Of a stretch of 64,000 bases of DNA, positions 18,388 through 63,697 are shown piece by piece (the stretch's first letter is position 1; each line of letters begins with the position of its first letter). Where the stretch lies: IMG/VR virus record IMGVR_UViG_3300029922_000001, positions 186,001-250,000 of that record; one strand, 5' to 3'. Below the pieces are notes generated by a model. That model was not told the DNA's origin. It worked only from the letters and a program-made list of their open reading frames with translations, and searched no databases. The translations under genes were made by a program, and so were the position numbers.

Positions 18388-19060
18388 TGTGTAGTTCCTT
18401 GTACAATAAAATTAGTTCTGAAATAACTTTAATCCAACTATCTCTATTATAATTAGTTTTTGAGTGACATGAATAACACAAAGGTATAAGATTTTGTTCT
18501 GTGCAATTTTTTTTATTATAATCTATATGATGCACAGCTAATCTAACATTATTTTTATTGCATATTAAACATTTATTATCATATGTCTGTTTTATGTGAG
18601 TTTTTAATTTTTTTGTCCATTCTTTGGAATATGGTTCAAATGAAGTTCCTCCTTTCCAATTTGGATGATTTTCACCACTTAGTGAATTTTGACAAAGCAA
18701 TTCATATTGTTTACTTGTATATGCCCATTTACCCTTTTTAGATTCACTTAGATGTTTTTTAGTTTCATCAGAATGTTTTTTTGAGAAAAAATGATTTAAT
18801 TCACCAATTCTGGGGTTTTTAATTAAATAAGTTTTTAAACTCTCACTGATTTTTTGAGACACTTCAGGGCGACAGGATGGATTGTTTTCTCCGCTTACCT
18901 GTTTAGAACGTTTTTGACGTATTTCTTTTGCTCTTTGTTTCCCTATTCTTTCTTCCCATGTTATTTGAGATTGCCACTCTTTTTGACAATTTTTTGAACA
19001 AAATCTTTGTTTATTTTTTCTTTCAAATTCATTATTACATTTTTCACATATTAACATCAT
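18377..19060 (-). mobile_element. free-standing HNH homing endonuclease with NUMOD3-like DNA-binding repeats
   Basis: KKHSDETKKHLSESKKG, HPNWKGG, CLIC...VHHIDYNKKN...NLIPLCYSCH. Confidence 0.85.
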
Positions 19061-21756: not shown

Positions 21757-24700
21757 ATGGCGAACAATAAGGGCAAAAAAAACGTGGGCGAACAAAATAC
21801 TTTCAACGATGATAATGTACTAGTTGACGAATTAGTTAGTAGTAAACAGGTTGAAGTTGAAACAACTGAAGAACCAAACGTTCAAGCAGAATCGTTAGAT
21901 TTTACTATGCAGTCTGGTACTAGTGAAGGTACTGGTATTACATCTGATCCTACTACCAGTAATGGTGGTGTTATTTCTAAAGATATTGAAATAATTACTA
22001 GCTGGGTTAATGGTTCCTTTGGTTCTACTGCCGCTGCCTATAGCTCTCTTGATTTTAAAATATCTAGAACTACAGATACTGAGCCAGTAACGACAGGCGA
22101 AGTTAAGGTTTCTTTATTTAATCATGGTGAGTGGCCCTCCACTCGTACTTCGTGGACAAACAACCCTAACTTACCAGTTTTAGCAATTGGTGGTTCTTGG
22201 AATAATGCAAGTACTGGTGCTACATCCTTTACATTAAGCGCCCCAACAGTTGGTGGATCTTTTGTTTATGGTGGAGCTAGTGGAGCGGGTTCAACATGGA
22301 CTGGTATTGCACCTACAATTTATCTAAAGCCATTTGATGGCACTGTTGAAGCATCAAACTTTGTCGCAATTGCACAACCTGCTGGTGGCGCACCAAACTC
22401 AGGTAGTGCTGGTACCTTTAATGGTTTAGTTTTAACTAATAACACTACTGGATTTGCAATGTATGGTGGAACTTCAACTGAACTTGGTCATGGACAAACA
22501 GCCGCAAATCAAATAACATTTTATAGTGGAACTTCATTTGGTTCTGGTGGTTCAACAGGAAGTGTAATAACATTTAACAGCAATTTAACCATTGGTAGTG
22601 CTGGTGCCCTTACTCTTAACCCAGCTTCTGGTGGTTCAACTGTTACTGTACCTGCTACTGGAACCTTAATCACTTCTACCCCTGCTGGTCAGCAACTTAT
22701 TTCAGGTGCCGCATCTTCTGCTGGTTTAAGACTTCAACCAAGTGCCACAGGTACTCCAAATATTGCAGAATTTTATGGTGCTACAGCTACATTAGGTACT
22801 TTAACTGTTGTTGCTAATGGTGGCACTTCAACAAACGCAAACTCAGCATATATTAGTCAAAATGCTGTATTTTTTGGTGATGGATCTGGATTAGTTAACA
22901 TTGTACCTGCTGGATTTAATGGTATTTTACCAATGAATAAAGGTGGTACTGGAGCAAACCTTACTGGTAATGCTGGTGCTATCGTTTATACTAATGGTAC
23001 AACCACAATGGCGATTAACTCTCCTGCTGGTTCTGCTGGTATTCCTTTATTGTCAGGAACTTCTGGTACAGGAACACCAACGTTTACAGCATTAAGTTTG
23101 GCTGGTGGTTCTTCTGTTGTAACAGGTACATTACCAATTGGTAATGGTGGAACAGGTACAGCATCAGCACCAACTCAATACGGTGTAATTTATGCTACTA
23201 CAACTTCAGCATATGCATCTACTGCTGCTGGTACTACAACTACAGTATTAATTGGTAACGCTGCTGGTTCCCCAACTTTTGGAGCAGTTGTCTTAACTAC
23301 AATGGTTTCTGGTACTTTGCCTATTGCTAATGGTGGAACTAACTCTACTACTGCTGCTTCTGCTGGTGCGGTAATTTATTCTTCTGCTTCCGCATTCTTA
23401 CCTAATACCCCTGCTGGTTCTGCTGGTATTCCACTTGTATCAGGAACTTCTGGTACAGGCGCACCAACATTTTCAGCATTAAACTTAGCTGGTGGAACTT
23501 CTATAATTACTGGTACCTTACCAGTTGGTAATGGTGGAACAGGCGCTTCATCTTTCTCTTCCACTAACTCATTAATAGTTTCAGGTTCAACTTCTACTAA
23601 TCCGCTTACTACAGTTACTGGTGCGGCAGGATTGCTTTATGGAACCGCTGCCAATACAGCCCCAACATTTGTAACATCAGTTGGTACCGCTATGACATTC
23701 ACTGCTGGTATAACTTTGAATGGTGGAACCAATAGTGTAACCGTTACACCAATTAACTCTACAGATATTGTCAATAAAGCTTATGTTGATAATGTAGCAC
23801 AAGGTATTTCTGTTCGTGGATCAGTTAGAGCTTCATCTGTACCAACATTTGAATCATTAATTGGTGGTTTACTATTGGGTGGTGGTATTAGCAGTGCTTG
23901 GTATACCAACTCTACTATTACATGGAATAGTGTTACTTACACTGGATATATTACAACCACTGTTACAACTACTAATAATACACCAGGTACTTCAGCCGTT
24001 ACTTCTGGTGGTATCTATACAGGATTTGACTCACCTAGTGGAACTTCATCAGCATTGAACTTAGGTGATCGTGTCTTAATTAAAGATTTCTCCAACTCTG
24101 CTACATATAATGCAATTCCAGGTACATTGCGTTCTTCAGCTAATGGTATTTATGTTGTTGTAACCACTGGTGGTGGTGGACCTAATTATACTATCGCTTT
24201 TGCTCGTGCGTTAGATTGTACAACCGCCGCTCAGTTAAGTGAAGGTGTATTCACGTTTATAGACGAAGGAGCAACTGAAGCTGAAACTGGTTGGATTCAA
24301 GTTGATAATACTTCAGTTATTAATCCTGCGTCAGCCGCAGCAAGTGCCGCTGTAACACCACAGTTTACTCAATTTACTGGTGCTGCTGATGTTACTGTTG
24401 TTATGGGACTTCAAAAGAGTACCAATACTATAGGTGCTAATGTTAATATAACATCTGGATCAACAACATTTAGTTTAGGTGGTAATGCTGTTTCTCCGTT
24501 CTCTAATAACACTAATCCAACATTTACAGTAACTTCAGCATCTGCCGCAACACTCACATTAACACAGAATACATCAGGTTGGTCATTAGCAGCGGGTAGT
24601 ACAAACGTTAATACATTAACATTGAGTCAAGCTGGAACTGCAACCTATACAATTGCTGGTACTGGTGGAACGTTAACAATTTCCAACTCAGCTTCATTAA

Positions 24701-26955
24701 CTGCTACAAATACAGGAACATTAACAATTACTGGTACTGGTGGAACATTAACAATTTCCAATACAGCTTCATTAACCGCTACTAACTCTGGAACATTAAC
24801 AATTGCTGGTACTGGTGGAACATTAACAATTTCCAATACAGCCTCCTTAACTGTTACTAACTCTGGAATTATTACTATTACTGGTGGTGGTGGAACTGTT
24901 TCAATTGGTTCAAACGTTACAGTTGCTGGTTCATCTGCTGTTTCAATTTCTTCACCTGTTACAGTTGCTGCTTCATCAACAGTATCAATCTCTTCTGGTG
25001 TTACAGTTGCTGGTTCATCTGCTGTTTCAATTTCTTCACCTGTTACGGTTGCCGCTTCCTCAACAGTATCAATCTCTTCTGGTGTTACAGTTGCCACTAA
25101 TGCTTCATTGTCTACTTCTGTTGCTGGTGGTGGTGCTGCTTCAACCGGTGGTATACTATTAACTAACAATATACAAGGTACTAATGCTGCTCAAGCTGCA
25201 TTAAGCTTAAATAGCGCATCAGGTGCGCTTGCTTTGGCTACATTCACCTTTACATTAGGTTCTTCTTCTACACTAAGTACAAATAGCCAAACCTTTACAT
25301 TAACTTCTTCAATGGGTAATGTAACCTTGGCGGCTGGTGTTGGTACATCTGCCACCACACACAACCTTGTTCAATCTGGTACTACTCAATATGTTCTAGA
25401 ATCTGCTACAGCACCAACAGCGTTGGGTGATATGTATTATGCCTCTACTACATCTTATGCTACCATGACTAAATTAAGTATTGGTGTCCGTGGCGCAACT
25501 TTGGTTGCTAATAGTGCAACTCCAACCCCAACCTGGCTTGCGCCATCAGCTACTGCTGGCGTAGCCGTTGTTTCTGGTGGTACTGGTGCTGACGTTGCCT
25601 ATGGAACAGTAGTTGTCGCGGGTGGTGGAACTGGTGCGATAACATTAACATTAAATGGTGTTCTCTACGGTAATGGAACTTCCGCTGTAGGTATTACGGC
25701 TCAAGGTGGAACTAATACAATTCTAACTGCTAATGCTGGCGCACCTAGCTTCTCAGCTACTCCAGTTATTAATACTTCTGTACAAATTGGTGTAGCAGGA
25801 ACATCTACAGGACAATTAATCTTAGCTAATGGAACTGGTGCTAACACTACTAAAATACAAGCTGGTGCTAGTGCCCCTTCATTAACATACACCTTGCCAA
25901 CAACCACACCAACTAGTGGTCAAATTCTATCTTCAGACAACGCTGGAAATCTTTCTTGGATTACAAACGTTACTGGTACCGTTACTGGTACAGGTACCGC
26001 TGGACAGGTAACTTATTGGAGTGGAACTAGTGTTATCACTGGCAGTGCAGGATTCCTATATGGAAGCAATCAGTTAACAGTTACTGGTTCTAGTGGTAGT
26101 GGTATTATTGATACAGTTACTGGTTTGACTACAACATCAACTCAGGGTTTTGCTTTACAAAATACTACTGCTTCTACATCTGGTGCTACACAACAACAAA
26201 GTCCTGGTTTTGACCTTATTGGACATGCTTGGAATACAACTCCTACCGCCGCTGATAATACTATCAGATTTAGAGAAGAACTTCAAGTTACTTCAGCTTC
26301 TACGCCTTCTGGAACTTTAGTTTGGAAATCATCTGTTGATACCGGTACAGCTTCATTCACTAATAGAATGACGTTGACTACAGGTGGTGCTTTAACAGTC
26401 ACTAGCTCATTAAGTGCTGGTGGTGGAGGATTTACTACTACAGCTAATGGTAATGTAACTATTGCACCACAAGCTTCTGGAACTAACACTATTACACTTA
26501 AAACAAATGTAACTGATGATGGTTCTGGAACAGTATATCTACTTAATGCTACTGACTCTACTGGTAATGTAAAGGCATCTATTACAGGTAGTGGTGTGAT
26601 TAGAGGTTCATCTAAGTCCTTCTGTATCCCTCACCCTACAAAAGCCAAAAAGAACCTTGTTTATGGATGTCTTGAAGGTCCAGAACATGGTGTTTATCAC
26701 AGAGGAACAGTAGAAGGTAAAGGAATAGTTAGAATTGATTTACCAGAATATTGGTCTAAGTTAGTTGCTAAGGGTGATTACACAGTTACTTTAACTGGTT
26801 GGAATGGCTCTAATATGACATTAGTTGATAAGGATGAAAATGGTTTCAATGTTCAATGCACCAACTTCTTTAAGAAACTATTTAGATTACCATACAAATT
26901 TGAATACGTCTTAGTTGGAGCTAGAGAATACTTTGATATTGAGGAAGATGTATGA
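21757..26955 (+). CDS. giant tail fibre-like protein (1732 aa)
   Basis: LPIxNGGTG repeats, VNKAYVD motif, C-terminal KSFCIPHP...EGPE...HRG domain. Confidence 0.82.
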   Translation: MANNKGKKNVGEQNTFNDDNVLVDELVSSKQVEVETTEEPNVQAESLDFTMQSGTSEGTGITSDPTTSNGGVISKDIEIITSWVNGSFGSTAAAYSSLDFKISRTTDTEPVTTGEVKVSLFNHGEWPSTRTSWTNNPNLPVLAIGGSWNNASTGATSFTLSAPTVGGSFVYGGASGAGSTWTGIAPTIYLKPFDGTVEASNFVAIAQPAGGAPNSGSAGTFNGLVLTNNTTGFAMYGGTSTELGHGQTAANQITFYSGTSFGSGGSTGSVITFNSNLTIGSAGALTLNPASGGSTVTVPATGTLITSTPAGQQLISGAASSAGLRLQPSATGTPNIAEFYGATATLGTLTVVANGGTSTNANSAYISQNAVFFGDGSGLVNIVPAGFNGILPMNKGGTGANLTGNAGAIVYTNGTTTMAINSPAGSAGIPLLSGTSGTGTPTFTALSLAGGSSVVTGTLPIGNGGTGTASAPTQYGVIYATTTSAYASTAAGTTTTVLIGNAAGSPTFGAVVLTTMVSGTLPIANGGTNSTTAASAGAVIYSSASAFLPNTPAGSAGIPLVSGTSGTGAPTFSALNLAGGTSIITGTLPVGNGGTGASSFSSTNSLIVSGSTSTNPLTTVTGAAGLLYGTAANTAPTFVTSVGTAMTFTAGITLNGGTNSVTVTPINSTDIVNKAYVDNVAQGISVRGSVRASSVPTFESLIGGLLLGGGISSAWYTNSTITWNSVTYTGYITTTVTTTNNTPGTSAVTSGGIYTGFDSPSGTSSALNLGDRVLIKDFSNSATYNAIPGTLRSSANGIYVVVTTGGGGPNYTIAFARALDCTTAAQLSEGVFTFIDEGATEAETGWIQVDNTSVINPASAAASAAVTPQFTQFTGAADVTVVMGLQKSTNTIGANVNITSGSTTFSLGGNAVSPFSNNTNPTFTVTSASAATLTLTQNTSGWSLAAGSTNVNTLTLSQAGTATYTIAGTGGTLTISNSASLTATNTGTLTITGTGGTLTISNTASLTATNSGTLTIAGTGGTLTISNTASLTVTNSGIITITGGGGTVSIGSNVTVAGSSAVSISSPVTVAASSTVSISSGVTVAGSSAVSISSPVTVAASSTVSISSGVTVATNASLSTSVAGGGAASTGGILLTNNIQGTNAAQAALSLNSASGALALATFTFTLGSSSTLSTNSQTFTLTSSMGNVTLAAGVGTSATTHNLVQSGTTQYVLESATAPTALGDMYYASTTSYATMTKLSIGVRGATLVANSATPTPTWLAPSATAGVAVVSGGTGADVAYGTVVVAGGGTGAITLTLNGVLYGNGTSAVGITAQGGTNTILTANAGAPSFSATPVINTSVQIGVAGTSTGQLILANGTGANTTKIQAGASAPSLTYTLPTTTPTSGQILSSDNAGNLSWITNVTGTVTGTGTAGQVTYWSGTSVITGSAGFLYGSNQLTVTGSSGSGIIDTVTGLTTTSTQGFALQNTTASTSGATQQQSPGFDLIGHAWNTTPTAADNTIRFREELQVTSASTPSGTLVWKSSVDTGTASFTNRMTLTTGGALTVTSSLSAGGGGFTTTANGNVTIAPQASGTNTITLKTNVTDDGSGTVYLLNATDSTGNVKASITGSGVIRGSSKSFCIPHPTKAKKNLVYGCLEGPEHGVYHRGTVEGKGIVRIDLPEYWSKLVAKGDYTVTLTGWNGSNMTLVDKDENGFNVQCTNFFKKLFRLPYKFEYVLVGAREYFDIEEDV
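24655..25094 (+). repeat. intragenic tandem repeats (3 x 75 nt, then 2 x 84 nt)
   Basis: AGTGGTLTISNxASLTxTNxGTLTI x3 from 24655; VTVAGSSAVSISSPVTVAASSTVSISSG x2 from 24916. Confidence 0.9.
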
Positions 26956-27241: not shown

Positions 27242-30200
27242 ATGGCTCAAGTCGATGTAATTATAACGCCACTGACTGGTAACATTGTCTTTTACGACAA
27301 TGACCTTGCTGCACAAAATAGTGTCCGTATTCAAGGAGAGTCACAAGGTGTTTTGTATTTTGCTGGTGACGGAGTTAATATTCCTAGTTCTGGCTTAACA
27401 GCCCCAACAGCAAGTACTAATCCTAATCAATCTGCATTGCCATATCCAGGTCAAGCCGCAAATGCATCAGCTAGTAATTCCTTGTTTGTTATATTAGACT
27501 CTATAACCGGTACTATTACACCAGGTTTATCTGGTTATGAAATGGGTTCCAGTACATTACCTTGGAGATATTGGGGTACAGCCGCAAACTTTAGTGGTGC
27601 AGTTACTTTAGCTGCAACATCTTCTTTATTTTTAGCTAATACTGGTGGTTCCAATGGCGCACCATTAACTTTTTCCGTATCTGCTTCAGCCCCAACCTCT
27701 TTATCTGCTGGTCAAATGTGGTGGGATGGAACTAATCTTAATTTTTATACCTCCACAACCAAGATTTTTGGTTGGGCTGATTTTTCCAATGTATCGGGGT
27801 TTTTAAGCGTATCACATGGTGGAACAGGGGTTGGAACATTTACCTCTAACGGAGTGTTATATGGTAATACTACTTCAGCCATTCAGGTTACGGCAGCATC
27901 TGGTGCTATAGGCGCTATTCTGCAAACAACCTCTTCAGGTGGTGTCCCATCTTTTGCCAATACTTTACCAGGAACATACACATTTTCTGGTTCGGGAACC
28001 GCATTAACAGTTACGAATAATGCATTAATTTCTGGTAACACTACATCACCAACTTATTATGGTTCCTCTTCTTCTGGTGGAACCCTAACGCTTAGTTCGA
28101 CTTCGAATGCGACCAAAGGTAAGATTTTAATTGGTTCCAATGCTGCTTTTGATGAAGTAAACACTAGGCTTGGTGTTGGTACACAGGGTCCAGTCCAAAG
28201 ACTAGATGTTGGCTATGGACATTTTCGATTTACAACACTTTCACACCCAAGCGCACCAACCGTAGCAACAGGCTCTGCTGGATCACTCACGGGAAATTAT
28301 TACTATTTCGTAACTTTTGTTACTACCCAAGGTGAAACAAATGCTGGCATAGTCTCATCTGTAGTTACTCCATCATCTCAACAAGTGAGTCTTACGGCAA
28401 TTCCAACAGACGCAACAGGCAATGCCACATCTCGAAATATTTATCGAACGACTACTGGCGGTGCTTCGGGTGGACCATTCTACTTACTAACGACCATAGG
28501 TGACAATACTACCACCTCCTATACAGATAATACGGTTGATGGATCACTAGGTACTATAAATTATTTCAGCAGAGAAAACACCACCGCTGGCTATTTTTAT
28601 GTAGGAACCCAATTTAGCGGATATTCAGGATTTTCAAATACTATATTTGGTCAATCTAACCAGAACATAAACAATATTTCTGGTACTTCAAATGTTGGTT
28701 TCGGACCCTTCACATATACCTCGCTCACCACAGGAACCAGAAATTCCGCTGTAGGATATAATGCACTCAACGCCCTAACAACAGGAAGTTACAATACTGG
28801 AGTAGGATGTTTCACTTTAGTTTCAGTTACAACAGGACAAAATAATGTCGGAATGGGACACAAGACACTTCAGGGTAGTATTGTTGGCAGCAATAATACT
28901 GCAATAGGAAGTAGCTGTTGTGACTATAACGTAAATGGATCAAGTATTGTAAGTATTGGATATAATTCATTAAACCAAAACTCTTTTTCAAGTAATATTA
29001 CAGCATTAGGTACTAGTACGGACTTTGTGTGTCCTGCCACGTTCACTGCTACAGCGACGAGTGGCGCTGGTTTGAATACTGGTGTGTATCAGTACATGGT
29101 CACATTTGTTGTCAACTCTAATGAAACCAATCCAAACTGTATAGTTAATGCCCCTGTCAGCGTTACAACAACGGGTTCAAACTCTCAGGTTTCAATAACA
29201 GGTATCCCAACTTATACTGGTCCGTATACTGCCACCCGAAAATTGTATCGAACAAAAGTAGGAGGATCATCAACATCTACTTTTTACTTGCTAACAACAA
29301 TAGGAGATAACATAACAACTTCTTACACAGATAGCACGGCTGATACTTCATTGGTAACGACATATAACCCAGTGAATAGTGGTATCTTAATAGGAGCGGG
29401 GGCGACTGGGCTTTACGCAAATCAGTTGGTAATTGGAAGCACAACATCCTCGGTTGCTGATGCTTATATAGGCAATGGAATCTATACATCTTCTCCCCAA
29501 AGTGTAACACTTCACGCAACGGGTGCCTCTGCATCGAACACGGCTGGAGCGAATTTCACTATCGCTCCAGGTCAAAGTACAGGAACTGCTGCTGGAGGAT
29601 TCTTCTCAGTTCAAACTGCTGCTGCTGGCTCAAGTGGCTCTACCTTTAATGCTTTAACTGAGCGATTCCGAATTGATTCAACAGGCTTAACGAGTGTTAA
29701 GGGTTCATTTAACGCTGGTTCTAGTGCCCAAATGACCATTGATACCTCTGGAAATATCGGAACTTCTGGTGGATATACTCAAACTGGAACAACAGCAAAT
29801 ACTTTTTCTGGTGCAACTACATTTTCAGCCGCAAGTACAGCTTTAACTGTCAATAATAATGCTACAATTAGTGGTTTATTAGGTGTTGGAGCCGCATCTT
29901 CCGCAGGTAACCAATTAAATGTAGTTACAACCGCTATTGGTAATGTTGGAATTTATGTTAATGCCATTACTGGTCAAACAGCTAATTTACAAAACTGGGC
30001 TGTTAATGGTACTCTAGTAGCTAATATTAATGCAAGTGGTAATTTTACTGCTACAACAACTATAACAATAAACAACATTGCTAGTGGTAATCCAATTTCC
30101 TTTACAGCCTCTGCGGGTGTAAGTGCTACTCAAGCTTATATTCTACCAACTAACGTTCCAAGTGGAACCGGTCAATTCTTAACATGTACATCAACAGCAC

Positions 30201-32464
30201 CATATCAATTTGCTTGGGCTGTACCTGCCGCAAGTGCTTCTAGCGTATCTATTGGTAGCACGGTTACTGGTGGTACAGATACTTACATGCTTTACATTAC
30301 CAATATAGGAACTCCAACCTTATCTCAAGATCCTGGTTTGACTTATAACTATGGAAACCAAGCGTTGCAATTGGCTGGTACAGTCTCAAATGCGGCTAAT
30401 TTGATAGTAACAAAAGCTGGAATTACCACAACATCAACAGCGGTTGCCCAAATTGTTAATAGCACTTTATCAACTGGTGGAAGTACTTTACAACAAAGTC
30501 CTGCTTTAGATTATATTGGTCACGCTTGGAATACAACCGCTACAGCGGCTGATAATTTTGTAAGAATGAGAAGTGAACTTCAAGTTACTTCTGCGGCTAC
30601 TCCTACTGGTACATTTATTTGGAAATCTTCAGTAGATACTGGAACTGCCTCATACACCAATAGAATGACCTTAACCACTGGTGGATTACTTACAGTTTCT
30701 AATGGTTTAACTATTACAGCAGGAACTTTCACTATTGGTAGTTTTACTTTTGCATTGAGTTCTAATTCAACTTTAAGCCTTAACAGTCAAACGTTGACCA
30801 TGAATACTACAATAGGTAATTTTACTATTGGTGCTGGCACCGGTACTTCTGCTACTCAGCATAATTTTGTTCAATCAGGCACTACTCAATATGTTCTAGA
30901 GTCAGCTACCGCCCCAACAGCGTTGGGTGACATGTATTATGGTAGTACTACTTCTTATGCTACTATGACTAAATTAAGTATAGGAGTTCGTGGTGCAACG
31001 TTAGTTGCATCAACATCAACCCCAACACCAACTTGGCTTGCACCATCCTCCACCGCTGGCGTAGCCATCATTTCTGGAGGTACTGGTGCTGATTTGGCTT
31101 ATGGTACAATTGTTGTAGCGGGCGGTGGAACAGGAAATAATACATTTGGCTCTACTAATTCATTATTAGTAACTGGTTCTAGCTCCACAGGAGCATTTGC
31201 CACTGTTACTGGTGCTAGTGGATTATTATATGGTACCGCTGCCAATACCGCTCCTACATTCACCACTTCTATTGGTGCTACTATTACATTCAGTAATGGT
31301 GCTACTATTTCAGGTGGAACCTTTACTTTGAACACATTAGAAAGTTGTACTTTAACTATTACAGGTACTGCTCCAAATGCTGGTAGATCCGATGTTGATA
31401 CATGGCAACCATCAGGTGCCCCAACAACTGATTATTATGCTTATTATCAACAGGTCAAATATGATTCTAACCAAGCGAATACTTTTGGAATTGCTGGTTT
31501 AAGATCCGATGCTATTACCACTGCTACAATGACAAGCTCTACATTGGCTCGCACTGATAGTATGCTTGCTTTTTATAGTCCAGGTCATGGTGGTACAGTA
31601 TCTCAGGCTACAGGTTTAAGAGTTACACAATTAGCTACTTGGTTAGGAACTACTACTAATTATATGGGTGTTCGTATTGAAAGTAACTATACTTCAGGAA
31701 CATTAACTAATGCTGCTGGTTTATATATAGATGTTATTGGTAGTAAGGGTTCTTCATCAGGTGCTTCAGTTTATTTGGTTTCTGATGGAACAGCTAAAAC
31801 TGGATTATCTTGGGGAACTAGCACTTCTGCATACACTGCTGATGTAGGTTTATTCCGTTCTGGTGCAGGCACTTTAACTATTACTGGCACGGCAACTGTA
31901 ACTAATGGTTTAACTATTAATAATGCAAAAACAACAGTTGCTGCCTCTACAACAGGTTATGCATCCTTAAATATTCCTGCTGGTACAGCCCCAACTTCAC
32001 CATCTAATGGTGATACCTATTATGATAGTAGCGGAATTCTTTGGTTCTATGATGGAACGACAGCTAAGAGAATTAATAAGCATCAAGCTTCAATTTGTAT
32101 GTGTGCTGGTTACACTCCAACAGGTACGGGCACTGGAGACGTTTGTGAATTCGTAGTGCCATATAAGGGTGATGGAACTACTCAAATAACTTATAATGTA
32201 AGAAGAATTGATTTTAGAGTTGGTACTGCTGGTACTGGTGGTAGTGTTACTGTTGAGGTTTACACCGGAACATCTGCATTTCCAGCATATGGTACAGCAA
32301 CTGTTATTGGAACAACAACACTTACAACGGGTACATATGAAAATTCCACAACTTCCTCCTTTACAACGTCCACAGTTCAAAGTGGTAATAAAGTTAGATT
32401 TACCCCTGTCACCATTGCGGGTACTGCAAACTGGACAGTTATGTTAGAGTTGGAGGAAGCATAA
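27242..32464 (+). CDS. giant tail fibre / adhesin-like protein (1740 aa)
   Basis: S/T/G-rich, NTAVGxxAL-type repeats, blocks shared with neighbouring fibre genes. Confidence 0.8.
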   Translation: MAQVDVIITPLTGNIVFYDNDLAAQNSVRIQGESQGVLYFAGDGVNIPSSGLTAPTASTNPNQSALPYPGQAANASASNSLFVILDSITGTITPGLSGYEMGSSTLPWRYWGTAANFSGAVTLAATSSLFLANTGGSNGAPLTFSVSASAPTSLSAGQMWWDGTNLNFYTSTTKIFGWADFSNVSGFLSVSHGGTGVGTFTSNGVLYGNTTSAIQVTAASGAIGAILQTTSSGGVPSFANTLPGTYTFSGSGTALTVTNNALISGNTTSPTYYGSSSSGGTLTLSSTSNATKGKILIGSNAAFDEVNTRLGVGTQGPVQRLDVGYGHFRFTTLSHPSAPTVATGSAGSLTGNYYYFVTFVTTQGETNAGIVSSVVTPSSQQVSLTAIPTDATGNATSRNIYRTTTGGASGGPFYLLTTIGDNTTTSYTDNTVDGSLGTINYFSRENTTAGYFYVGTQFSGYSGFSNTIFGQSNQNINNISGTSNVGFGPFTYTSLTTGTRNSAVGYNALNALTTGSYNTGVGCFTLVSVTTGQNNVGMGHKTLQGSIVGSNNTAIGSSCCDYNVNGSSIVSIGYNSLNQNSFSSNITALGTSTDFVCPATFTATATSGAGLNTGVYQYMVTFVVNSNETNPNCIVNAPVSVTTTGSNSQVSITGIPTYTGPYTATRKLYRTKVGGSSTSTFYLLTTIGDNITTSYTDSTADTSLVTTYNPVNSGILIGAGATGLYANQLVIGSTTSSVADAYIGNGIYTSSPQSVTLHATGASASNTAGANFTIAPGQSTGTAAGGFFSVQTAAAGSSGSTFNALTERFRIDSTGLTSVKGSFNAGSSAQMTIDTSGNIGTSGGYTQTGTTANTFSGATTFSAASTALTVNNNATISGLLGVGAASSAGNQLNVVTTAIGNVGIYVNAITGQTANLQNWAVNGTLVANINASGNFTATTTITINNIASGNPISFTASAGVSATQAYILPTNVPSGTGQFLTCTSTAPYQFAWAVPAASASSVSIGSTVTGGTDTYMLYITNIGTPTLSQDPGLTYNYGNQALQLAGTVSNAANLIVTKAGITTTSTAVAQIVNSTLSTGGSTLQQSPALDYIGHAWNTTATAADNFVRMRSELQVTSAATPTGTFIWKSSVDTGTASYTNRMTLTTGGLLTVSNGLTITAGTFTIGSFTFALSSNSTLSLNSQTLTMNTTIGNFTIGAGTGTSATQHNFVQSGTTQYVLESATAPTALGDMYYGSTTSYATMTKLSIGVRGATLVASTSTPTPTWLAPSSTAGVAIISGGTGADLAYGTIVVAGGGTGNNTFGSTNSLLVTGSSSTGAFATVTGASGLLYGTAANTAPTFTTSIGATITFSNGATISGGTFTLNTLESCTLTITGTAPNAGRSDVDTWQPSGAPTTDYYAYYQQVKYDSNQANTFGIAGLRSDAITTATMTSSTLARTDSMLAFYSPGHGGTVSQATGLRVTQLATWLGTTTNYMGVRIESNYTSGTLTNAAGLYIDVIGSKGSSSGASVYLVSDGTAKTGLSWGTSTSAYTADVGLFRSGAGTLTITGTATVTNGLTINNAKTTVAASTTGYASLNIPAGTAPTSPSNGDTYYDSSGILWFYDGTTAKRINKHQASICMCAGYTPTGTGTGDVCEFVVPYKGDGTTQITYNVRRIDFRVGTAGTGGSVTVEVYTGTSAFPAYGTATVIGTTTLTTGTYENSTTSSFTTSTVQSGNKVRFTPVTIAGTANWTVMLELEEA

Positions 32465-45996: not shown

Positions 45997-46545
45997 TTAA
46001 TAATGGGTAATAGATCGTTTTTCTAGTTCTTTTTCGATCATTGGATAAATCGTTTCAAGAGTTTTTCTGTGTTCTACTAAAACCGGGTTATAAGAGACTT
46101 CATATTTACAAAGAAAGTCTACGATTGCATTATCTACTTCAATTGATTTTTTTAGATCATGTAATCTATTGTCATTTTCAAATTTATTATTAGGATTTCT
46201 GGTAAGTAGAATATTGTAATTATCAAATTCATTGAATAATTCTAAAATGAAATTATTCCAAGCCTTTTTTGGCTTGGGATTATAAAAAATACCAAGTAAG
46301 ATAGGAGAATCAGTAATAACAATATCCACTTGTCCATGCGGTTGCATTTGTCTTTGAATTTGAGTTCCTGTAACATAAGCTTGGTTTTTAATTGTTTTTT
46401 CATCCTGATCATAGACTAAATCTTTGGCAAATTCCCTAACTAATTCAACATTATAACTATTTAATTTTAATTCATAAAATAGACCAGCAGCGAGCGTACT
46501 TTTTCCACAGCTTGGTCCTCCGAAGAAGTTTATTATGAGAGACAT
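45997..46545 (-). CDS. NadR/AAA_28-like P-loop kinase/ATPase
   Basis: NFFGGPSCGKST, ELVREFAKDL, ITDSPILL; start at ATG 46545. Confidence 0.8.
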   Translation of the reverse strand: MSLIINFFGGPSCGKSTLAAGLFYELKLNSYNVELVREFAKDLVYDQDEKTIKNQAYVTGTQIQRQMQPHGQVDIVITDSPILLGIFYNPKPKKAWNNFILELFNEFDNYNILLTRNPNNKFENDNRLHDLKKSIEVDNAIVDFLCKYEVSYNPVLVEHRKTLETIYPMIEKELEKRSITHY

Positions 46546-46551
46546 ACTTTT

Positions 46552-46573
46552 ATTGTACAGCTTGTGGTATAGT
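46552..46573. promoter_or_regulatory. back-to-back -10 elements driving two divergent leaderless genes
   Basis: TACAAT (minus, 46552-46557) and TATAGT (plus, 46568-46573), each exactly 6 nt from an ATG. Confidence 0.7.
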
Positions 46574-46579
46574 TGATAC

Positions 46580-48103
46580 ATGAAAGCACCCGTGCTAGAC
46601 CTAATTAATTACGATCCCTCTAAAGATTATCTAATCCCGCCAGATAAGTTGGCAATGTGGGCAAAACACAAAATGAATGTTTTGTTCATTGGTGAGACTG
46701 GTGTAGGAAAAACCGCAATTATCATGTCGTTTTTTGAACAACTTGGATTGCGCTGCAAATATTTTTCTGCACCTACGCTTGAACCATATATTGACATTAT
46801 TGGTGTTCCTCGTGAACATACAGACGCAGATGGTAATACGTTCCTAGAGTTTATTCAAAAAAGAGAATTTGCTAAGGATGAAATTGATGTTGTGTTTATT
46901 GATGAATTCAATAGGGCACGTCCTGAAGTTCGTAATGCTGTTATGGAGTTCGTGCAATTTAAGAGTATCAACGGTAAGAAATACCACAATCTTAAAATGG
47001 TTTGGGCTGCAATTAACCCTTACGATGAAGATGGCACTTATGATGTTGATCGTCTTGACCCTGCTATGATGGGAAGATTCCCTATTAAGCATTTCGTAGA
47101 TAATCGTCCTTGTCCAGCTTATTTTGAAGCTGTATTTGGTAAATATATAGCGGATACTTCTATTGAGTGGTGGACTAAGTTGACAACAGATCATCCTAAT
47201 ACTTTGGCTTTGGTTCCACCTAGAACATTACATGATGCAGTTAGTTGGTATTTGCTTGGTGGAGACGTTAGAGACGTGATGCCAAAAGACACTAATATTA
47301 ATTGCACTGAATTTGTAACAACTCTCGCGGCTGATCCAATTGAGGTTCAGGTTGAAAAACTCTTTACTAGACAAGATCAAAATGCTACTAAAGCATTTTT
47401 GAATACTGCTAATACATTGTTCAGAGCTAAAAGTATTATTGAATCAAAAGAAGAGTGGCTAAACTACTTCCTTCCTTTGGCACGTCCTGAAGTAATTTCG
47501 GGTTGGGCTAGAGAATCAGAAGTGGTGTTAGATAATCTAGTTCGTAATATCAATATTGGTCCTAATCGAAGTATCATTGATGATTTTATCAATTTTCAAC
47601 CTGATCTTAAACCAAAAATTAAGCAAGCTTGGGTAACAACACCATTTATTCAAGATCCAGCTTATAGAGTTTTGACAGAAAAGATTGTTTTTGATATCAA
47701 TCTAGCTTGTTCGGAATTTTATGTTTCTGTACCAACAGGTAAAGTTAATTATTCTTTCACAGAACGATTAATTGCCCTCAAGGTAAAAACTAATAATTTC
47801 GAATATAAGAATGATCAGGATAAAGCAGGAACATGGACGGCACTTTGTGCTTATGTTCCAGGTGATCTTTCGGAAGATGATGCTAAATTCGGTCTGTATG
47901 TTATGGATACATTGGCATCTGCCAAACTTGGCTTCTTGGCTGAATTTGATAAATCTGTTTCTTTGTTGAATACTTTTGCTGCAACCCTGTATTTTAAGCA
48001 TGGTTATACTCCTGAACAGATTTGGAAAATCTGTCCACACGTTGAACAAAGTAATAAGTCTTTGACTTCAGCTAAGCATACTAAAAGTATGTTTTTGAAA
48101 TAA
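46580..48103 (+). CDS. MoxR-like AAA+ ATPase
   Basis: GETGVGKT Walker A, VFIDEFNRA Walker B, AAINP, LDPAMMGRF. Confidence 0.85.
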   Translation: MKAPVLDLINYDPSKDYLIPPDKLAMWAKHKMNVLFIGETGVGKTAIIMSFFEQLGLRCKYFSAPTLEPYIDIIGVPREHTDADGNTFLEFIQKREFAKDEIDVVFIDEFNRARPEVRNAVMEFVQFKSINGKKYHNLKMVWAAINPYDEDGTYDVDRLDPAMMGRFPIKHFVDNRPCPAYFEAVFGKYIADTSIEWWTKLTTDHPNTLALVPPRTLHDAVSWYLLGGDVRDVMPKDTNINCTEFVTTLAADPIEVQVEKLFTRQDQNATKAFLNTANTLFRAKSIIESKEEWLNYFLPLARPEVISGWARESEVVLDNLVRNINIGPNRSIIDDFINFQPDLKPKIKQAWVTTPFIQDPAYRVLTEKIVFDINLACSEFYVSVPTGKVNYSFTERLIALKVKTNNFEYKNDQDKAGTWTALCAYVPGDLSEDDAKFGLYVMDTLASAKLGFLAEFDKSVSLLNTFAATLYFKHGYTPEQIWKICPHVEQSNKSLTSAKHTKSMFLK

Positions 48104-48147: not shown

Positions 48148-49545
48148 ATGCAATTCCTTAATCCAGTGGAAACCACAAAGATTCTTCGCGCTCTTGAGCG
48201 TTATCATATTGTGTTTTCTAAAATATTTGAATTTGGTTATGTCAGTTTCGATAAATCTGTACCTAGAGCATGTTTAAGATTTAATAAAGAAACTGGTAAA
48301 CCTTTTCAGTATGTTTTTAACCCAGATTTTTGGGAGTCAATTGATTTTGATACTAAACTTTTTATTATTAAACACGAAACTGCACACTCATTTTTGAATC
48401 ATTGTCAAAGGGGAAAACAAATTTTGGCATCTGGTGGGAAAATAGAGACTTTGAATGTAGCTATGGATCTTGCCGTTAATCACATGTTGGTTGATTGCTT
48501 TGGTGTTGACAGAGATAACGTTAAAGATGCTGATAGTTATTGTTGGGTTGATACGGTTTTTCCTGATGATAAAATCCCTGATGATCTACACTTTGAGGGT
48601 TATTATGCTTTATTGTTAAAGAAAGAACAAGATAAAAACGACGATAAAGAAGAACAAGATAAGGGTGACAATAAGGGTGATCAAGAATCTTCCGAAGACG
48701 ATAAAGGTTCATCACAAGGATCTGATGGCGGTAAAGGTTCGTCTAAACCACAAATTGTAGATAGTCATGAATTTTTAGATGAACAAGCGCAAGAAGCGTT
48801 TGAGAAAGTTCTTGAAAGAGTCAAAAAGCAATTAAACGTGGATGAACTTAAAGATTTTAATGATAAGCTTCAACAACATGGTGATGGTCCAAGCGGAATT
48901 CAATTTGAAATTGAATTACCAAAACTTAAACCCAACTTAAAGTGGCTTAATCTTGTTACAAAATTTAAGTATAAACACAACGAACTACATTATAAAATTA
49001 AACCTCAGTTTGTTTTTAAAAATAGGCGCATGAATATGTTGCCTAAAACAAATTTAATGCCTCAAGAATATGAAGTCAGAGAAATTAGTGAAAAGAAAAC
49101 CATTATTGATGTTTGGTGTTTTTTAGATGTTTCCGGTTCATGTATTAGTTTTAAAGAACATTTTCTTTTAGCTGTTAAAACTTTTCCAGAAGAATATTTT
49201 AGATTGAGGGTTTTTGTTTTTGATACTACCGTATTAGAAATAGACTTAAAAAAAACTATATTACGTTGTGGTGGTGGAACACATTTTCATATTATTGAGG
49301 ATAAAATTCAACATATATGTAAAACTGAATCTTGTAATTATCCAAGTATGGTTGTAGTGGTTACTGACGGAGAAGGAACCAGGGTTAATCCACAATATCC
49401 AAAAAGATGGCATTGGCTTTTGACTGATAAAGCGGCTTATAAGAAAAAAGGACTAACTTATATTCCTGTGAAGTCTCGAATTTTTGAATTGAAGGAATTC
49501 TTTGATATTCCTACAGTTCAAAAACAATTAAGAAAGAAGTTTTGA
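48148..49545 (+). CDS. metallopeptidase-vWA domain protein (DUF2201-like), MoxR partner
   Basis: KHETAH (HExxH), NVAMDLAVN, acidic linker, FLDVSGS MIDAS, GGGT, VVTDG. Confidence 0.85.
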   Translation: MQFLNPVETTKILRALERYHIVFSKIFEFGYVSFDKSVPRACLRFNKETGKPFQYVFNPDFWESIDFDTKLFIIKHETAHSFLNHCQRGKQILASGGKIETLNVAMDLAVNHMLVDCFGVDRDNVKDADSYCWVDTVFPDDKIPDDLHFEGYYALLLKKEQDKNDDKEEQDKGDNKGDQESSEDDKGSSQGSDGGKGSSKPQIVDSHEFLDEQAQEAFEKVLERVKKQLNVDELKDFNDKLQQHGDGPSGIQFEIELPKLKPNLKWLNLVTKFKYKHNELHYKIKPQFVFKNRRMNMLPKTNLMPQEYEVREISEKKTIIDVWCFLDVSGSCISFKEHFLLAVKTFPEEYFRLRVFVFDTTVLEIDLKKTILRCGGGTHFHIIEDKIQHICKTESCNYPSMVVVVTDGEGTRVNPQYPKRWHWLLTDKAAYKKKGLTYIPVKSRIFELKEFFDIPTVQKQLRKKF

Positions 49546-53270: not shown

Positions 53271-53344
53271 TGGTCCCTCTGCTGAGAATCGAACTCAGAC
53301 CGAACCGTTATAAGCGGTTCCGCTCTACCTTGAGCTACAAAGGG
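53271..53344 (-). tRNA. tRNA-Ile (anticodon UAU)
   Basis: CCCTTTG/CAGAGGG acceptor, GCTC/GAGC D-stem, AACCG-CTTATAA-CGGTT, CTGAG-TTCGATT-CTCAG, encoded CCA. Confidence 0.92.
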
Positions 53345-55643: not shown

Positions 55644-56003
55644 TTAGTCATTTATGTGTGCTAAACGACTTTTATAGATTAAAGTCGTTAATTCTTCATT
55701 GAGAAAAGATATAAATTTATCATAATTAACATCGGCATTTTGAATGGAATGATTTACCTCTGGATATTTACCTTTATTCGAATGCACAATAACTTTTAAG
55801 TCTTGTAACATAGCTCTTGTGGCTGGATTCCAAACATGTCCCCATCTACGATGTTCAAAACTTTTAAATATATCCAGTAATTCCTGAATGTTATATTTGA
55901 CTCCCTTAACCACAATGAAATAATGATGAACCCAAACTTGCTCAGACTCATATTTAACAGTATCAATGCCTAAATCATTCATAATATCAGAAGTATACCT
56001 CAA
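55644..56003 (-). CDS. hypothetical protein (paralogue of the previous gene)
   Basis: YFIVVKGVKYNIQELLDIF. Confidence 0.7.
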   Translation of the reverse strand: MRYTSDIMNDLGIDTVKYESEQVWVHHYFIVVKGVKYNIQELLDIFKSFEHRRWGHVWNPATRAMLQDLKVIVHSNKGKYPEVNHSIQNADVNYDKFISFLNEELTTLIYKSRLAHIND

Positions 56004-56647
56004 ATCGTATATGATTTGAGGTTATAAAAATACGCCCTTGTTAATCTTTTGACCGTAGAGCTAGGTCCAATCCAAGACATGACGTGCCAACCACTAACAC
56101 CCATTGACGAGCCTGTAACAGCCATTTGGAGCCTAATGGATATGTTCTTGACTTTCATGCCCAACTCTACACATAATGCTTTAATTGTGGTTTGAACCCA
56201 CTCTAAGGAAATGTCATTCTCACCTTCAAGAAGAGGTATATAATGATCTAAAAACAATCTAAAATCATCATCAAAAAGAGTTGGATTCTCAAAGGGAATT
56301 TCATAGTCAGAAATGGCAATACAACTCAAATGTTTAGCAAAATCAGATAGAATAAATGCTTTATCCTTAATATGCACAAGCATTTCATCAATGCGAGGAT
56401 GATTCAAAGTGTCTTTGAAATGATGTAGTTGCGCTCCCATCAATCGTTTATTGAAATCCTTAATTTGCTTATTGTAGTCAACCTCATTGTCCTCATTGAC
56501 TTCTATGGGGTTGTTTTTAATGATCGTATCTAAGATCATGAGATTTGGTAACTTTGAGTTATCAATATCGAACAAATTTGGTTTGTATAGAAAATCGCGC
56601 ATAATGCGTTTATTATACTTTATATTAACCCCTTTCAGCTTCTTCAA
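56000..56647 (-). CDS. stand-alone class I aaRS (GluRS-type) anticodon-binding domain protein
   Basis: IKALCVELGMKVKNISIRLQMAVTGSSMGVSGWHVMSWIGPSSTVKRL resembles the GluRS C-terminal helical domain; no HIGH/KMSKS; true start may be ATG 56602. Confidence 0.6.
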   Translation of the reverse strand: MKKLKGVNIKYNKRIMRDFLYKPNLFDIDNSKLPNLMILDTIIKNNPIEVNEDNEVDYNKQIKDFNKRLMGAQLHHFKDTLNHPRIDEMLVHIKDKAFILSDFAKHLSCIAISDYEIPFENPTLFDDDFRLFLDHYIPLLEGENDISLEWVQTTIKALCVELGMKVKNISIRLQMAVTGSSMGVSGWHVMSWIGPSSTVKRLTRAYFYNLKSYTI

Positions 56648-59720: not shown

Positions 59721-59887
59721 GCTTACATTATAACACTATTTGACTATAAAATACAACACTTTAGGTGGATTACGGTAATATTTAGCTAAAGTTGCTTGAC
59801 CCTCCAGTGTTGCTAATGCACGATCAATAATAGCTTCTCTATCTTTCATATCTTGAATAATTGCATTAATATTTTTCGTGTTACTCG

Positions 59888-59993
59888 TGGAGCGGGTAGC
59901 GGAATTCGAATCCGCATTTTAGCGTTCCTCTAAGTAAATATTTTAATATTTCTCACAGGCAACGCCATGTTCTAACCATTGAACTATATCCGC
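59888..59993 (-). tRNA. tRNA-Gly (GCC) with a 31-nt insert/intron (59927-59957) between positions 36 and 37
   Basis: GCGGATA acceptor, GTTC/GAAC D-stem, TGGCG-TTGCC|insert|AA-CGCTA, GCGGA-TTCGAAT-TCCGC, CCA; removing the insert gives a canonical 75-nt tRNA. Confidence 0.88.
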
Positions 59994-60014
59994 GTGAATA
60001 TATTATACCACTTA

Positions 60015-60281
60015 TTAAGACGCTTTGACCTTTTTGTGAGTGTATTGTTCGGCGTTAATTAATTGTGAAATATTAGGATCTGAGCTAAATTCAATATCAT
60101 TCTTAATGATATTGAGGACTTCTTCACCATTTGGCATAGAAATTAATTTCTCTATTAAAGAAAATAATTTTCTATTTTGTTCCATTTGTGCGTCAAGTAC
60201 ATCTTTATTAACCATAATTTTGGGTGTAAAATTTGGTATATATTTATAACTGCATGGCATTCTTTCTGATCGTATTGGCAT
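60015..60281 (-). CDS. hypothetical protein
   Basis: 88-aa ORF. Confidence 0.55.
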   Translation of the reverse strand: MPIRSERMPCSYKYIPNFTPKIMVNKDVLDAQMEQNRKLFSLIEKLISMPNGEEVLNIIKNDIEFSSDPNISQLINAEQYTHKKVKAS

Positions 60282-62940: not shown

Positions 62941-63429
62941 CTAAGTACTATCTTTAGTTGGATTAACACTAAATAATTCTTTTCTTATTTCCATCCACAA
63001 TTTTCCTAATTGATTTTGTCCATCTTTATTAGGTCCCCATCCCCAAAAATTATCACGCCAACTACACTCTACGATTGCATTATCACCACTAGCTTTAAGT
63101 TTTTTCATAACATACGGATGTTGATTTGCTTTTTCTTTTAAAATTTCTTTCATAATATCAAGTTTAACTTCATCCCAATCAACACGTCTTATATTTTTAT
63201 TTTCCTCAGCCCATTTGAAACAAGCATGTGCTGAAGGCATTTTTCTAATCATATTTTTGATTTTTGGATCGTCAAATTTCTCAGAATGATAAGCGTGTTC
63301 TGATGTTGGATAAATCTTACCCTTCCAATATAGTTGAAATGCAGAAAAATTAGAGAAAATATAATAATCACGTTCATAACAATCAAGGATTGGTAAGTCG
63401 TAATTCGCTAAATCGTGATATTCAATCAT
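62941..63429 (-). CDS. NADAR (YbiA/DUF1768) family hydrolase
   Basis: FSNF, YPTSEHAYHSEKF, DNFWGWG, GQNQLGKLWMEIR; start at ATG 63429. Confidence 0.9.
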   Translation of the reverse strand: MIEYHDLANYDLPILDCYERDYYIFSNFSAFQLYWKGKIYPTSEHAYHSEKFDDPKIKNMIRKMPSAHACFKWAEENKNIRRVDWDEVKLDIMKEILKEKANQHPYVMKKLKASGDNAIVECSWRDNFWGWGPNKDGQNQLGKLWMEIRKELFSVNPTKDST

Positions 63430-63436
63430 GCTATTA

Positions 63437-63697
63437 TTATAAGTAATCTTCATGATATTCTACTACTGGAGTGTTTGATTTAGCTTTAGACTCTTCTTCA
63501 GCTAACATGCCCTTTTGATAAGCCTCATTAAGCAATCTTAAATGTCTAGCTTCATGATCAGTAATCTCTCCATCCATTTGTGAAATTGAATTTATATCTT
63601 GTTCAACATACATCATCTTAGGAGATTCGTTAACGTCCTGAAATAATTTAAGATCGTGTGTTTTGGTTGTATTTTCGTTTATGATATTTGGTTTCAT
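63437..63697 (-). CDS. hypothetical protein
   Basis: 86 aa; ATG 5 nt after CATAAT. Confidence 0.6.
   Translation of the reverse strand: MKPNIINENTTKTHDLKLFQDVNESPKMMYVEQDINSISQMDGEITDHEARHLRLLNEAYQKGMLAEEESKAKSNTPVVEYHEDYL

Follow-up and report, generated by a model that had tools for sequence, protein, structure and literature searches.

Putative short hairpin introns in the anticodon loops of tRNA genes of a huge bacteriophage from peat

How can a tRNA be produced from a gene whose anticodon loop carries 31 extra nucleotides, too few for any self-splicing intron? This question is raised by a locus in the genome of a huge phage recovered from a peat metagenome. The window analysed here is a stretch of 64,000 nt that corresponds to bases 186001-250000 of the 441,498-bp IMG/VR contig UViG_3300029922_000001; the same region is found on a 521,591-bp contig in an ENA assembly. 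A preliminary description, made from the sequence alone, noted at 59888-59993 a tRNA-Gly(GCC) gene with a hairpin insert between positions 36 and 37, and proposed a short intron of an apparently different type that is removed by enzymes. The features of the locus, all in window coordinates, are as follows.

59888-59993, minus strand: interrupted tRNA-Gly(GCC) gene of 106 nt, with CCA encoded.
59958-59993, minus strand: 5' exon, tRNA positions 1-36, ending in the anticodon GCC.
59927-59957, minus strand: 31-nt insert (5'-UGUG...UAGAGG-3'), present in a single copy in the window, that extends the anticodon stem into a hairpin of about 20 bp and whose last two G pair with C35 and C36.
59888-59926, minus strand: 3' exon, from A37 onward, with the T arm, the acceptor strand, U73 and CCA.
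60002-60010, minus strand: TGgTATAAT, an extended -10-like box ending 8 nt before tRNA position 1, of putative function only.
59884-59887, minus strand: CGAG directly after CCA, the start of the CGAGA(U)AAWAU trailer/leader motif that recurs between the tRNAs of this phage.
59893-60036, no strand assigned: stretch covered by one 158-nt contig of a peat metatranscriptome.
53271-53344, minus strand: uninterrupted tRNA-Ile(UAU) (ARAGORN; Rfam 58.7 bits), the only other tRNA in the window.
62941-63453, minus strand: NADAR-domain protein (PF08719, E = 4.2e-27), part of the NAD+/ADP-ribose gene set that includes Tpt1.

The observation itself held up in full, the coordinates being correct, although the gene lies on the minus strand. 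The Rfam tRNA model RF00005 matches 59891-59993 (minus strand) at 52.8 bits, against a gathering score of 29, with 35 nt where the model expects 4, that is, with 31 extra nucleotides in the anticodon loop. Read 5' to 3' from 59993 to 59888, the gene consists of an acceptor stem GCGGAUA/UACCCGC with a single A/C mismatch (A5/C68), which is tolerated by the Rfam model, a D arm GUUC/GAAC, an anticodon stem UGGCG/CGCUA, a T arm GCGGA-UUCGAAU-UCCGC, U73 and an encoded CCA. ARAGORN in default mode misses the gene, whereas with introns allowed it calls the complement of 59888-59993 with a 31-nt insert, placing this insert at 33/34 and consequently labelling the gene Pro-AGG. From sequence alone the insert could sit at any of several positions in the loop, but the tRNA body carries the bacterial glycine identity marks G1:C72, C2:G71, G3:C70 and U73, and only the 36/37 position gives the remaining members of this set, C35 and C36. 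After in silico removal of 59927-59957, the loop reads TT-GCC-AA and ARAGORN calls a standard 75-nt tRNA-Gly(GCC); charging with glycine is inferred from these identity elements.

The minimum-free-energy structure of the anticodon arm is the one given in the preliminary description. C35 and C36 pair with the last two insert bases, both G, and the first insert U pairs with an A, whereas G34 is bulged and there is one G/G mismatch; beyond these follow UGAG/CUUA, a bulged A and then AAAUAU/AUAUUU. The arm thereby becomes a helix of about 20 bp that folds at -19.1 kcal/mol (z = -6.5 against shuffled sequences). The promoter assigned to this gene in the preliminary description corresponds to the TGgTATAAT box at 60010-60002, which lacks a -35 box and for this reason was not listed by a simple promoter scan.

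The genome encodes phage-type genes, namely terminase-like/PhoH, topoisomerase II, ThyX, capsid-like proteins, a lysozyme, homing endonucleases and TnpB, along with a sigma-70 family factor, IF3, a peptidoglycan hydrolase and a prepilin-type signal, which point to a bacterial host. Thus, this is a huge phage of a bacterium, not a bacterium or an archaeon, a point that the preliminary description had missed.

The interrupted tRNA-Gly gene is not a single case. We examined 99,361 nt of this phage for tRNA genes using ARAGORN with introns allowed, which yielded 15 tRNA calls, 4 of them interrupted, whereas 30 shuffles of the same DNA gave no calls at all. The three additional interrupted genes lie within 30 kb of the first, in two loci read along the contig beyond the window (denoted L001 and L042), so that the phage carries at least four such genes:

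Gly-GCC, minus strand, window 59888-59993, insert of 31 nt.
Cys-GCA, minus strand, L001 8332-8423, equivalent to window positions 65433-65524, insert of 17 nt.
Thr-UGU, minus strand, L001 10195-10293, equivalent to window positions 67296-67394, insert of 18 nt.
Leu-UAG, minus strand, L042 19090-19193 (contig 275381-275484), equivalent to window positions 89381-89484, insert of 18 nt.

The cloverleaves of all four genes are otherwise intact, and removal of the inserts results in standard tRNAs in each case. The isotypes also fit independent marks, that is, the identity set described above for Gly, U73 for Cys, and a long variable arm, A73 and a place in an array of Leu tRNAs for Leu. The interrupted Leu gene scores 38.6 bits in Rfam; the interrupted Cys and Thr genes were not reported by cmscan at E <= 1, but are called by ARAGORN both with the insert and after its removal. 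In default mode ARAGORN missed all four genes, and with introns allowed it found all four but named three of them wrongly. Its labels Pro-AGG, Val-AAC and Arg-UCU were rejected because they stem from its placement of the insert and conflict with the acceptor, discriminator and variable-arm identity. The Cys, Thr and Leu genes lie inside tRNA arrays and have the same CGAGA(U)AAWAU spacers as their intact neighbours.

In all four genes the insert continues the anticodon stem, and the junctions conform to a four-part rule: the second-to-last base of the 5' exon pairs with the last insert base, the last base of the 5' exon pairs with the second-to-last insert base, the first insert base pairs with the third-from-last insert base, and the first base of the 3' exon, which is always A, pairs with an upstream U at position 33 or 34. 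In each gene exactly one of six possible cut positions satisfies this rule, and it is the position required by the identity of the tRNA, namely 36/37 for Gly, Thr and Leu and 35/36 for Cys; by contrast, among 11 ARAGORN intron calls in unrelated viral loci, only 1 of 66 positions satisfied it. The last two bases of the insert covary with the anticodon bases that they face (GG with CC, AC with GU, CU with AG, and GC with GC). Part of the rule follows from the conserved U33, A37 and A38 of any tRNA, so that the informative part is the complementarity to the anticodon. The Gly and Thr inserts additionally share 5'-UGUG and UAGA-NN-3', with a G/G mismatch at the same place, but the loop sequences are otherwise unrelated. 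The Leu gene was found after the rule had been formulated, and it obeyed it.

Both inferred cut sites lie in one helix, on opposite strands and 2 bp apart, such that cutting there would leave 2-nt 3' overhangs on both products. This arrangement is not the bulge-helix-bulge motif of archaeal and eukaryal introns: the minimum-free-energy folds of all four anticodon arms show continuous helices through both cut sites, and when the two 3-nt bulges separated by a 4-bp helix are drawn manually at the required cut sites, the four bases before each bulge cannot pair. The canonical position 37/38 does not fit either, because a cut there would put a pyrimidine at position 37 in three cases (U in Gly, U in Thr, C in Leu) and would give Ser-GCU on a Cys-type body in the fourth. 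Group I introns, which also interrupt the anticodon loop of bacterial-type tRNA genes, are self-splicing ribozymes of about 200 nt or more; inserts of 17-31 nt lack room for such a catalytic core, and no Rfam intron or ribozyme family matches here. The inferred geometry is, however, that of RNase III products. RNase III excises stem-loop intervening sequences from bacterial 23S/16S rRNA with cut sites inside the stem (PMC4990558, PMC8708148), but these sequences are about 100-450 nt long, replace helix tips, and the fragments are not rejoined (PMC4990558), whereas in a tRNA rejoining would be essential for function. The cut sites are derived here from the folds and the required mature loops in 4 of 4 genes, not mapped, and the helix, which is about 20 bp in Gly, is only 13-14 bp in the other three genes unless stacking on the D stem counts, compared with the about two helical turns associated with RNase III cleavage.

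The phage encodes an RNA healing-and-sealing module, the presence of an RNA ligase being one of the points that the preliminary description had proposed to check. At contig positions 306286-307314, there is a 342-aa protein with an N-terminal HNH nuclease domain (E = 1.7e-7) and a full RNA_ligase domain (PF09414, E = 1.8e-27, motif I KMDG), that is, an HNH-fused Rnl2-type RNA ligase; the locus that carries it overlaps the IMG contig at 100% identity over 10.6 kb. A T4-type Pnkp kinase-phosphatase (AAA_33 + HAD_PNKP, E = 3.4e-32; PF25109 + PF13671), a cREC cyclic-phosphate-processing domain (PF20274, E = 1e-13), a Macro-domain protein and a kinase-only AAA_33 protein, with a weak best PDB match to T4 polynucleotide kinase (E = 0.12), are encoded further along the contig. 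About 300 nt from the first tRNA array lies an RNA 2'-phosphotransferase, Tpt1/KptA (PF01885, E = 1.6e-44), in which the invariant catalytic Arg and His residues of the family are conserved. Toolkits of this kind, including HNH-Rnl2 fusions, cREC and KptA, have been described in jumbo phages, where they are common without any link to introns and are interpreted as repair of tRNAs cut by host nucleases (PMC7824862, PMC9503650). Therefore, their presence shows that the phage can heal and seal broken tRNA but not that it splices. No RNase III, EndA, RtcB or 2H protein was detected among the proteins scanned in about 127 kb, which leaves out about 70% of the genome as well as the host, and a regular-expression search for 2H and ligase motifs in the first 95 kb found nothing. 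Searches of Pfam, PHROGs, PDB and Atlas with the uncharacterized ORFs next to the tRNAs (226, 220 and 372 aa) produced nothing usable; the RNase III matches of the 226-aa protein had a TM of about 0.3 on a poor model and the protein lacks the RNase III signature, so these were rejected. The 359-aa and 406-aa ORFs beside Pnkp resemble a capsid protein, not a ligase.

The only RNA evidence obtained is a single 158-nt contig of low depth (3.8) from a peat metatranscriptome (run X23, record 5), which matches 59893-60036 with 0 differences and 0 gaps and runs continuously through the insert. It thus represents the unspliced precursor together with 43 nt of upstream leader, whereas the 450 nt on either side have no RNA contig. 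This argues for a stable, transcribed precursor, although DNA carry-over cannot be excluded, and suggests that transcription starts upstream of the TGgTATAAT box. No spliced junction (GCC|AA) was seen in the assembled contigs; however, assembled contigs drop rare variants and ordinary RNA-seq recovers mature tRNAs poorly, so that this is weak evidence against splicing. DNA contigs from three other peat samples show no allele without the insert.

Searches for relatives, in which compensatory changes could be sought, were likewise negative. A megablast search of INPHARED phages with 2 kb of the locus gave no match, exact tRNA halves and the neighbouring proteins matched only this contig in IMG/VR, and a gapped pattern search of JGI metagenomes recovered the same contig in two samples plus two chance hits, so that the covariation described above rests on the four genes of one genome. 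A motif scan of IMG/VR (TGTG..TAGANNAA..GGTTCRAWTCC) returned 30 loci, none of which is a convincing homologue. We also searched for an association with Tpt1: 79 other Tpt1-encoding viral loci held 138 tRNAs and 12 heterogeneous ARAGORN intron calls, none of which showed this geometry beyond chance, and the closest Tpt1 homologues come from a bacterial contig and a 129-kb phage-like contig with no tRNA nearby.

Collectively, the evidence makes it somewhat more likely than not that the inserts are short, protein-dependent intervening sequences in functional phage tRNA genes: too short to self-splice and unlike archaeal introns, they probably need a protein cut-and-rejoin step not yet described in bacteria or their viruses. 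In this view, the insert turns the anticodon loop of the precursor into a continuous helix, and making the mature 7-nt loop would require two cuts on opposite strands, offset by 2 bp, followed by rejoining across 36/37 (35/36 in Cys). The most likely cutting agent would be a duplex-specific, metal-dependent nuclease leaving 3'-OH and 5'-phosphate ends, such as host RNase III, which gives this geometry, or the HNH domain fused to the phage ligase, and the sealing would be performed by the HNH-Rnl2-type ligase, although Rnl2-type ligases prefer nicks in duplex RNA to open anticodon loops. If, alternatively, the cutter leaves 2',3'-cyclic phosphate and 5'-OH ends, Pnkp, cREC and Tpt1 of the phage could heal the ends and clean the junction. 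What the analysis demonstrates directly is the structure of the genes, the geometry they share, the covariation, the presence of the enzyme genes and a precursor-length contig in an RNA library, with the reservation on DNA carry-over given above; that cutting and rejoining take place, which enzymes are responsible, whether by RNase III or by the phage module acting on these precursors, and that the mature tRNAs are charged is inference. The interpretation in the preliminary description is accordingly supported in part. The tRNA-Gly(GCC) identity, the 31-nt hairpin at 36/37 masking the anticodon, an insert too short for a group I or II intron and the lack of a bulge-helix-bulge motif are supported, and the three further genes with the same junction design, together with the RNA ligase and end-healing toolkit, make an enzyme-removed intron the best reading; on the other hand, short non-self-splicing introns in phage tRNAs have a precedent in the Lak megaphages (PMC6784885), and no spliced junction, endonuclease or relative with compensatory changes was found in the searches described above, so that removal of the insert remains an inference.

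Among the alternatives, the two main ones, each unlikely on the present evidence, assume that no splicing occurs. The anticodon-masked RNAs might act as such, for example, as decoys or sponges for host anticodon nucleases, synthetases or modification enzymes, or as regulators. This would agree with detection of the unspliced form only, with the base pairing of the anticodon in all four genes (G34 being bulged in the Gly fold), with the fact that the Cys, Thr and perhaps Leu genes duplicate an uninterrupted isoacceptor of the same phage and hence are dispensable in principle, and with the tRNA-conflict setting of a phage that has a repair toolkit and many tRNA genes of its own (PMC7824862). However, each insert has exactly the length and register that leave a canonical U33-NNN-A37-A38 loop with an anticodon matching the identity of the body, which a decoy would not need, and no binding partner is known. 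Alternatively, the genes could be pseudogenes hit by small palindromic insertions. Apart from the redundancy and the lack of spliced RNA and of relatives that could show conservation, this possibility is favored by the abundance of mobile elements in the genome (TnpB, HNH and GIY-YIG genes), but four independent inserts with unrelated loop sequences all sit in the anticodon loop in the same register and each is complementary to its own anticodon, the cloverleaves, T loops and flanking spacers are intact, and there are no target-site duplications and no repeated element family.

The remaining alternatives appear less plausible still. Excision by RNase III without rejoining, as in bacterial rRNA, with the two halves held together as a split tRNA, is compatible with the staggered geometry but very unlikely, because a break between positions 36 and 37 opens the anticodon loop and tRNAs nicked in that loop are inactive, which is the basis of anticodon-nuclease defence (PMC7824862), and because the phage has an RNA ligase. 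An archaeal-type intron removed by an EndA splicing endonuclease of an archaeal host or of the phage could be suggested by the short insert next to the anticodon and by Tpt1, a tRNA-splicing enzyme in eukaryotes, but is highly improbable given the absence of the motif, the position of the insert, the marks of a bacterial host and the lack of an EndA-like protein among those scanned. An assembly or sequencing artefact can be all but dismissed, there being no evidence in its favor, because the identical sequence occurs in independent assemblies and samples, namely two JGI samples, the ENA contig, Logan contigs of several runs and an RNA library.

A more far-reaching possibility, which we consider tentative and less likely than not, is a third kind of enzymatic tRNA splicing native to a bacterial virus, in which short introns embedded in a continuous helix are recognised by their pairing with the anticodon, removed by two cuts staggered by 2 bp, made by host RNase III or by the HNH domain of the HNH-RNA-ligase fusion, and the exons are rejoined by that ligase. 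If the fusion does both steps, it would be a single cut-and-seal splicing enzyme. Such introns could let the phage make the maturation of some of its tRNAs depend on its own enzymes, or shield the anticodon from host anticodon nucleases until then. According to the textbook view, bacterial-type tRNA introns are self-splicing ribozymes and protein-dependent tRNA splicing belongs to archaea and eukaryotes. The Lak introns hinted at an exception but gave no handle on the mechanism, whereas the minimal inserts described here, four in one genome that also carries a ligase and an end-healing toolkit, share an explicit structural rule and thus turn an unexplained observation into a directly testable model, with defined substrates of about 100 nt, two predicted cut sites per substrate and a short list of candidate enzymes. 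If confirmed, this would show that RNA repair enzymes of phages can serve as a splicing machine, the long-proposed evolutionary origin of tRNA splicing, and would add an intron class that current bacterial-mode tRNA finders miss or mislabel.

Literature searches for short protein-dependent introns in bacterial or phage tRNAs found only the 'enigmatic' introns of Lak megaphages (Devoto et al. 2019, PMC6784885; also PMC8346664). These too are non-self-splicing inserts in the anticodon loop of some tRNA genes of huge phages of bacteria, with an unexplained mechanism; alleles with and without the intron exist, and by the authors' alignments the excision point is offset by one nucleotide from the canonical 37/38. 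By our reading of their Table S6, Lak Thr-UGU fits 36/37 with the same 35-n, 36-(n-1), i1-(n-2) pairing, whereas the Tyr and Phe junctions do not show the 2-bp-stagger pairing. The Lak inserts, however, are 79-114 nt long and contain a T-arm-like or tRNA-like domain and a conserved AAAUUAAAC-like segment, which are lacking in the plain 17-31-nt hairpins described here, there is no sequence similarity, and the phage lineage and habitat differ. Archaeal and eukaryal introns, removed by EndA/Sen and sealed by RtcB or by Trl1 with Tpt1, resemble the present inserts in being short, next to the anticodon and paired with it, and a Tpt1 gene, a polynucleotide kinase and a ligase are present here as well, but they differ in the bulges, the position and the host. 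Phage tRNA repair by T4 Pnkp and Rnl1 after PrrC cleavage, and the jumbo-phage modules with KptA/Tpt1, cREC and HNH-Rnl2 (PMC7824862, PMC9503650), involve the enzyme families encoded here and act on breaks in anticodon loops; however, repair restores a tRNA cut by a host nuclease, whereas here the gene itself carries extra sequence that must be removed, and no link between these modules and introns has been reported. We regard the inserts as probably a form of protein-dependent phage tRNA intron distinct from the Lak, archaeal and group I types. Finally, the Tpt1 gene of this phage sits beside genes for IF3, DUF4326, CYTH-like ORFs and a PARP.

A recurrent spacer, CGAGA(U)AAWAU, was found to follow the 3' end (often after CCA) of almost every tRNA and to run up to position +1 of the next one. 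The spacer was observed in two loci retrieved separately and numbered in their own coordinates, L001 (8430-10500, minus strand) and L042 (18600-19400, minus strand), and, within the window, at 59884-59887. It may be a processing signal or, alternatively, a promoter-like -10 element that is repeated in the arrays. In L042, at about 18606-18780 (minus strand), there are two tRNA-like genes with the anticodon loops UU-UAG-AA and UU-AAG-AA, both of which start with GCUAGGG and carry 6-7 extra nt (GAUAAY) between position 9 and the D stem; ARAGORN does not call these genes, and the Rfam search yielded only about 20 bits. In L001, at 10402-10485 (minus strand), a tRNA with the Thr anticodon CGU has a 14-nt variable region that forms a small stem, which is unusual for Thr, and the interrupted Thr-UGU gene also has a variable region of 12 nt, in this case unstructured. 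In the peat DNA runs, a foreign uninterrupted tRNA-Gly(UCC) from another abundant organism cross-matches the 3' half of the interrupted tRNA-Gly gene (window 59888-59923; 32 of 36 nt), which inflates the depth there.

The other genes that we noticed in the window and in the additional retrieved loci (L001, L003, L042, L043, L127 and L128, each in its own coordinates) were as follows.
L001 10471-14359, L003 8570-9868, window 62941-63453 and L127 18740-19312: a dense NAD+/ADP-ribose gene set comprising PARP (WGR + PARP), Tpt1, DUF4326, two CYTH-like ORFs (EIERKF), NADAR and Macro.
Window 45997-46581 and L043 269-889: two AAA_28 (NadR-like) kinases, occurring in addition to this set.
Window 56000-56647 (minus strand), L003 1171-2619, L128 17833-18969 and L128 11029-11409: translation genes scattered around the tRNAs, namely a stand-alone GluRS/GlnRS-type anticodon-binding domain (215 aa), a class IIb aaRS, a class Ib (Tyr/Trp-type) aaRS, ribosomal protein L12 and IF3.
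Window 1539-2060 and 2097-3935 (plus strand): a PIN_4 domain protein directly followed by a 612-aa PhoH-like ATPase.
Window 21757-26955 and 27242-32464 (plus strand): two adjacent ORFs of 1,732 and 1,740 aa.
L043 1057-2166 and 8087-9433, L042 12507-13403 and 17656-18522, L043 2833-3645, and window 18377-19060 and 48148-49545: mobile-element genes, namely two TnpB (OrfB_IS605/Cas12f-like), several HNH genes and a GIY-YIG homing-endonuclease-like gene.

The PIN_4 and PhoH-like genes form a split PhoH2-like arrangement, and the two products could be an RNA helicase/nuclease pair; they are, on the evidence of domain content alone, a possible candidate for RNA processing. The two large adjacent ORFs produced no Pfam match and lie in a stretch of higher G+C (0.40-0.41 against about 0.33 elsewhere). 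The many mobile-element genes surround the tRNA arrays. With respect to the contig as a whole, the ENA assembly of the same phage is 521,591 bp, against 441,498 bp in IMG/VR, and accordingly, the IMG/VR contig may be incomplete or the ENA one may be partly concatenated.

tRNA and tRNA-like genes were also noted in other viral genomes. In locus L047 (5195-5505), which comes from the 73-kb, Tpt1-encoding IMG/VR record UViG_3300025645_000055, two tRNAs (one Lys-UUU-like and another) appear to carry a 12-13-nt GNRA-tetraloop hairpin (GGC-GAAA-GCC and GAC-GAAA-GUC) inserted in the D loop, which is a different kind of interrupted or expanded phage tRNA. Finally, in L030 4140-5147 (a locus of a 304-kb phage), L019 (another of the retrieved loci) and L024 10275-10392 (a locus of a 250-kb phage), several tRNA-like genes share the same acceptor stem, AGUCAGG/CCUGACU, but have different, poorly formed anticodon arms that ARAGORN reads as 'introns' of 11-29 nt.
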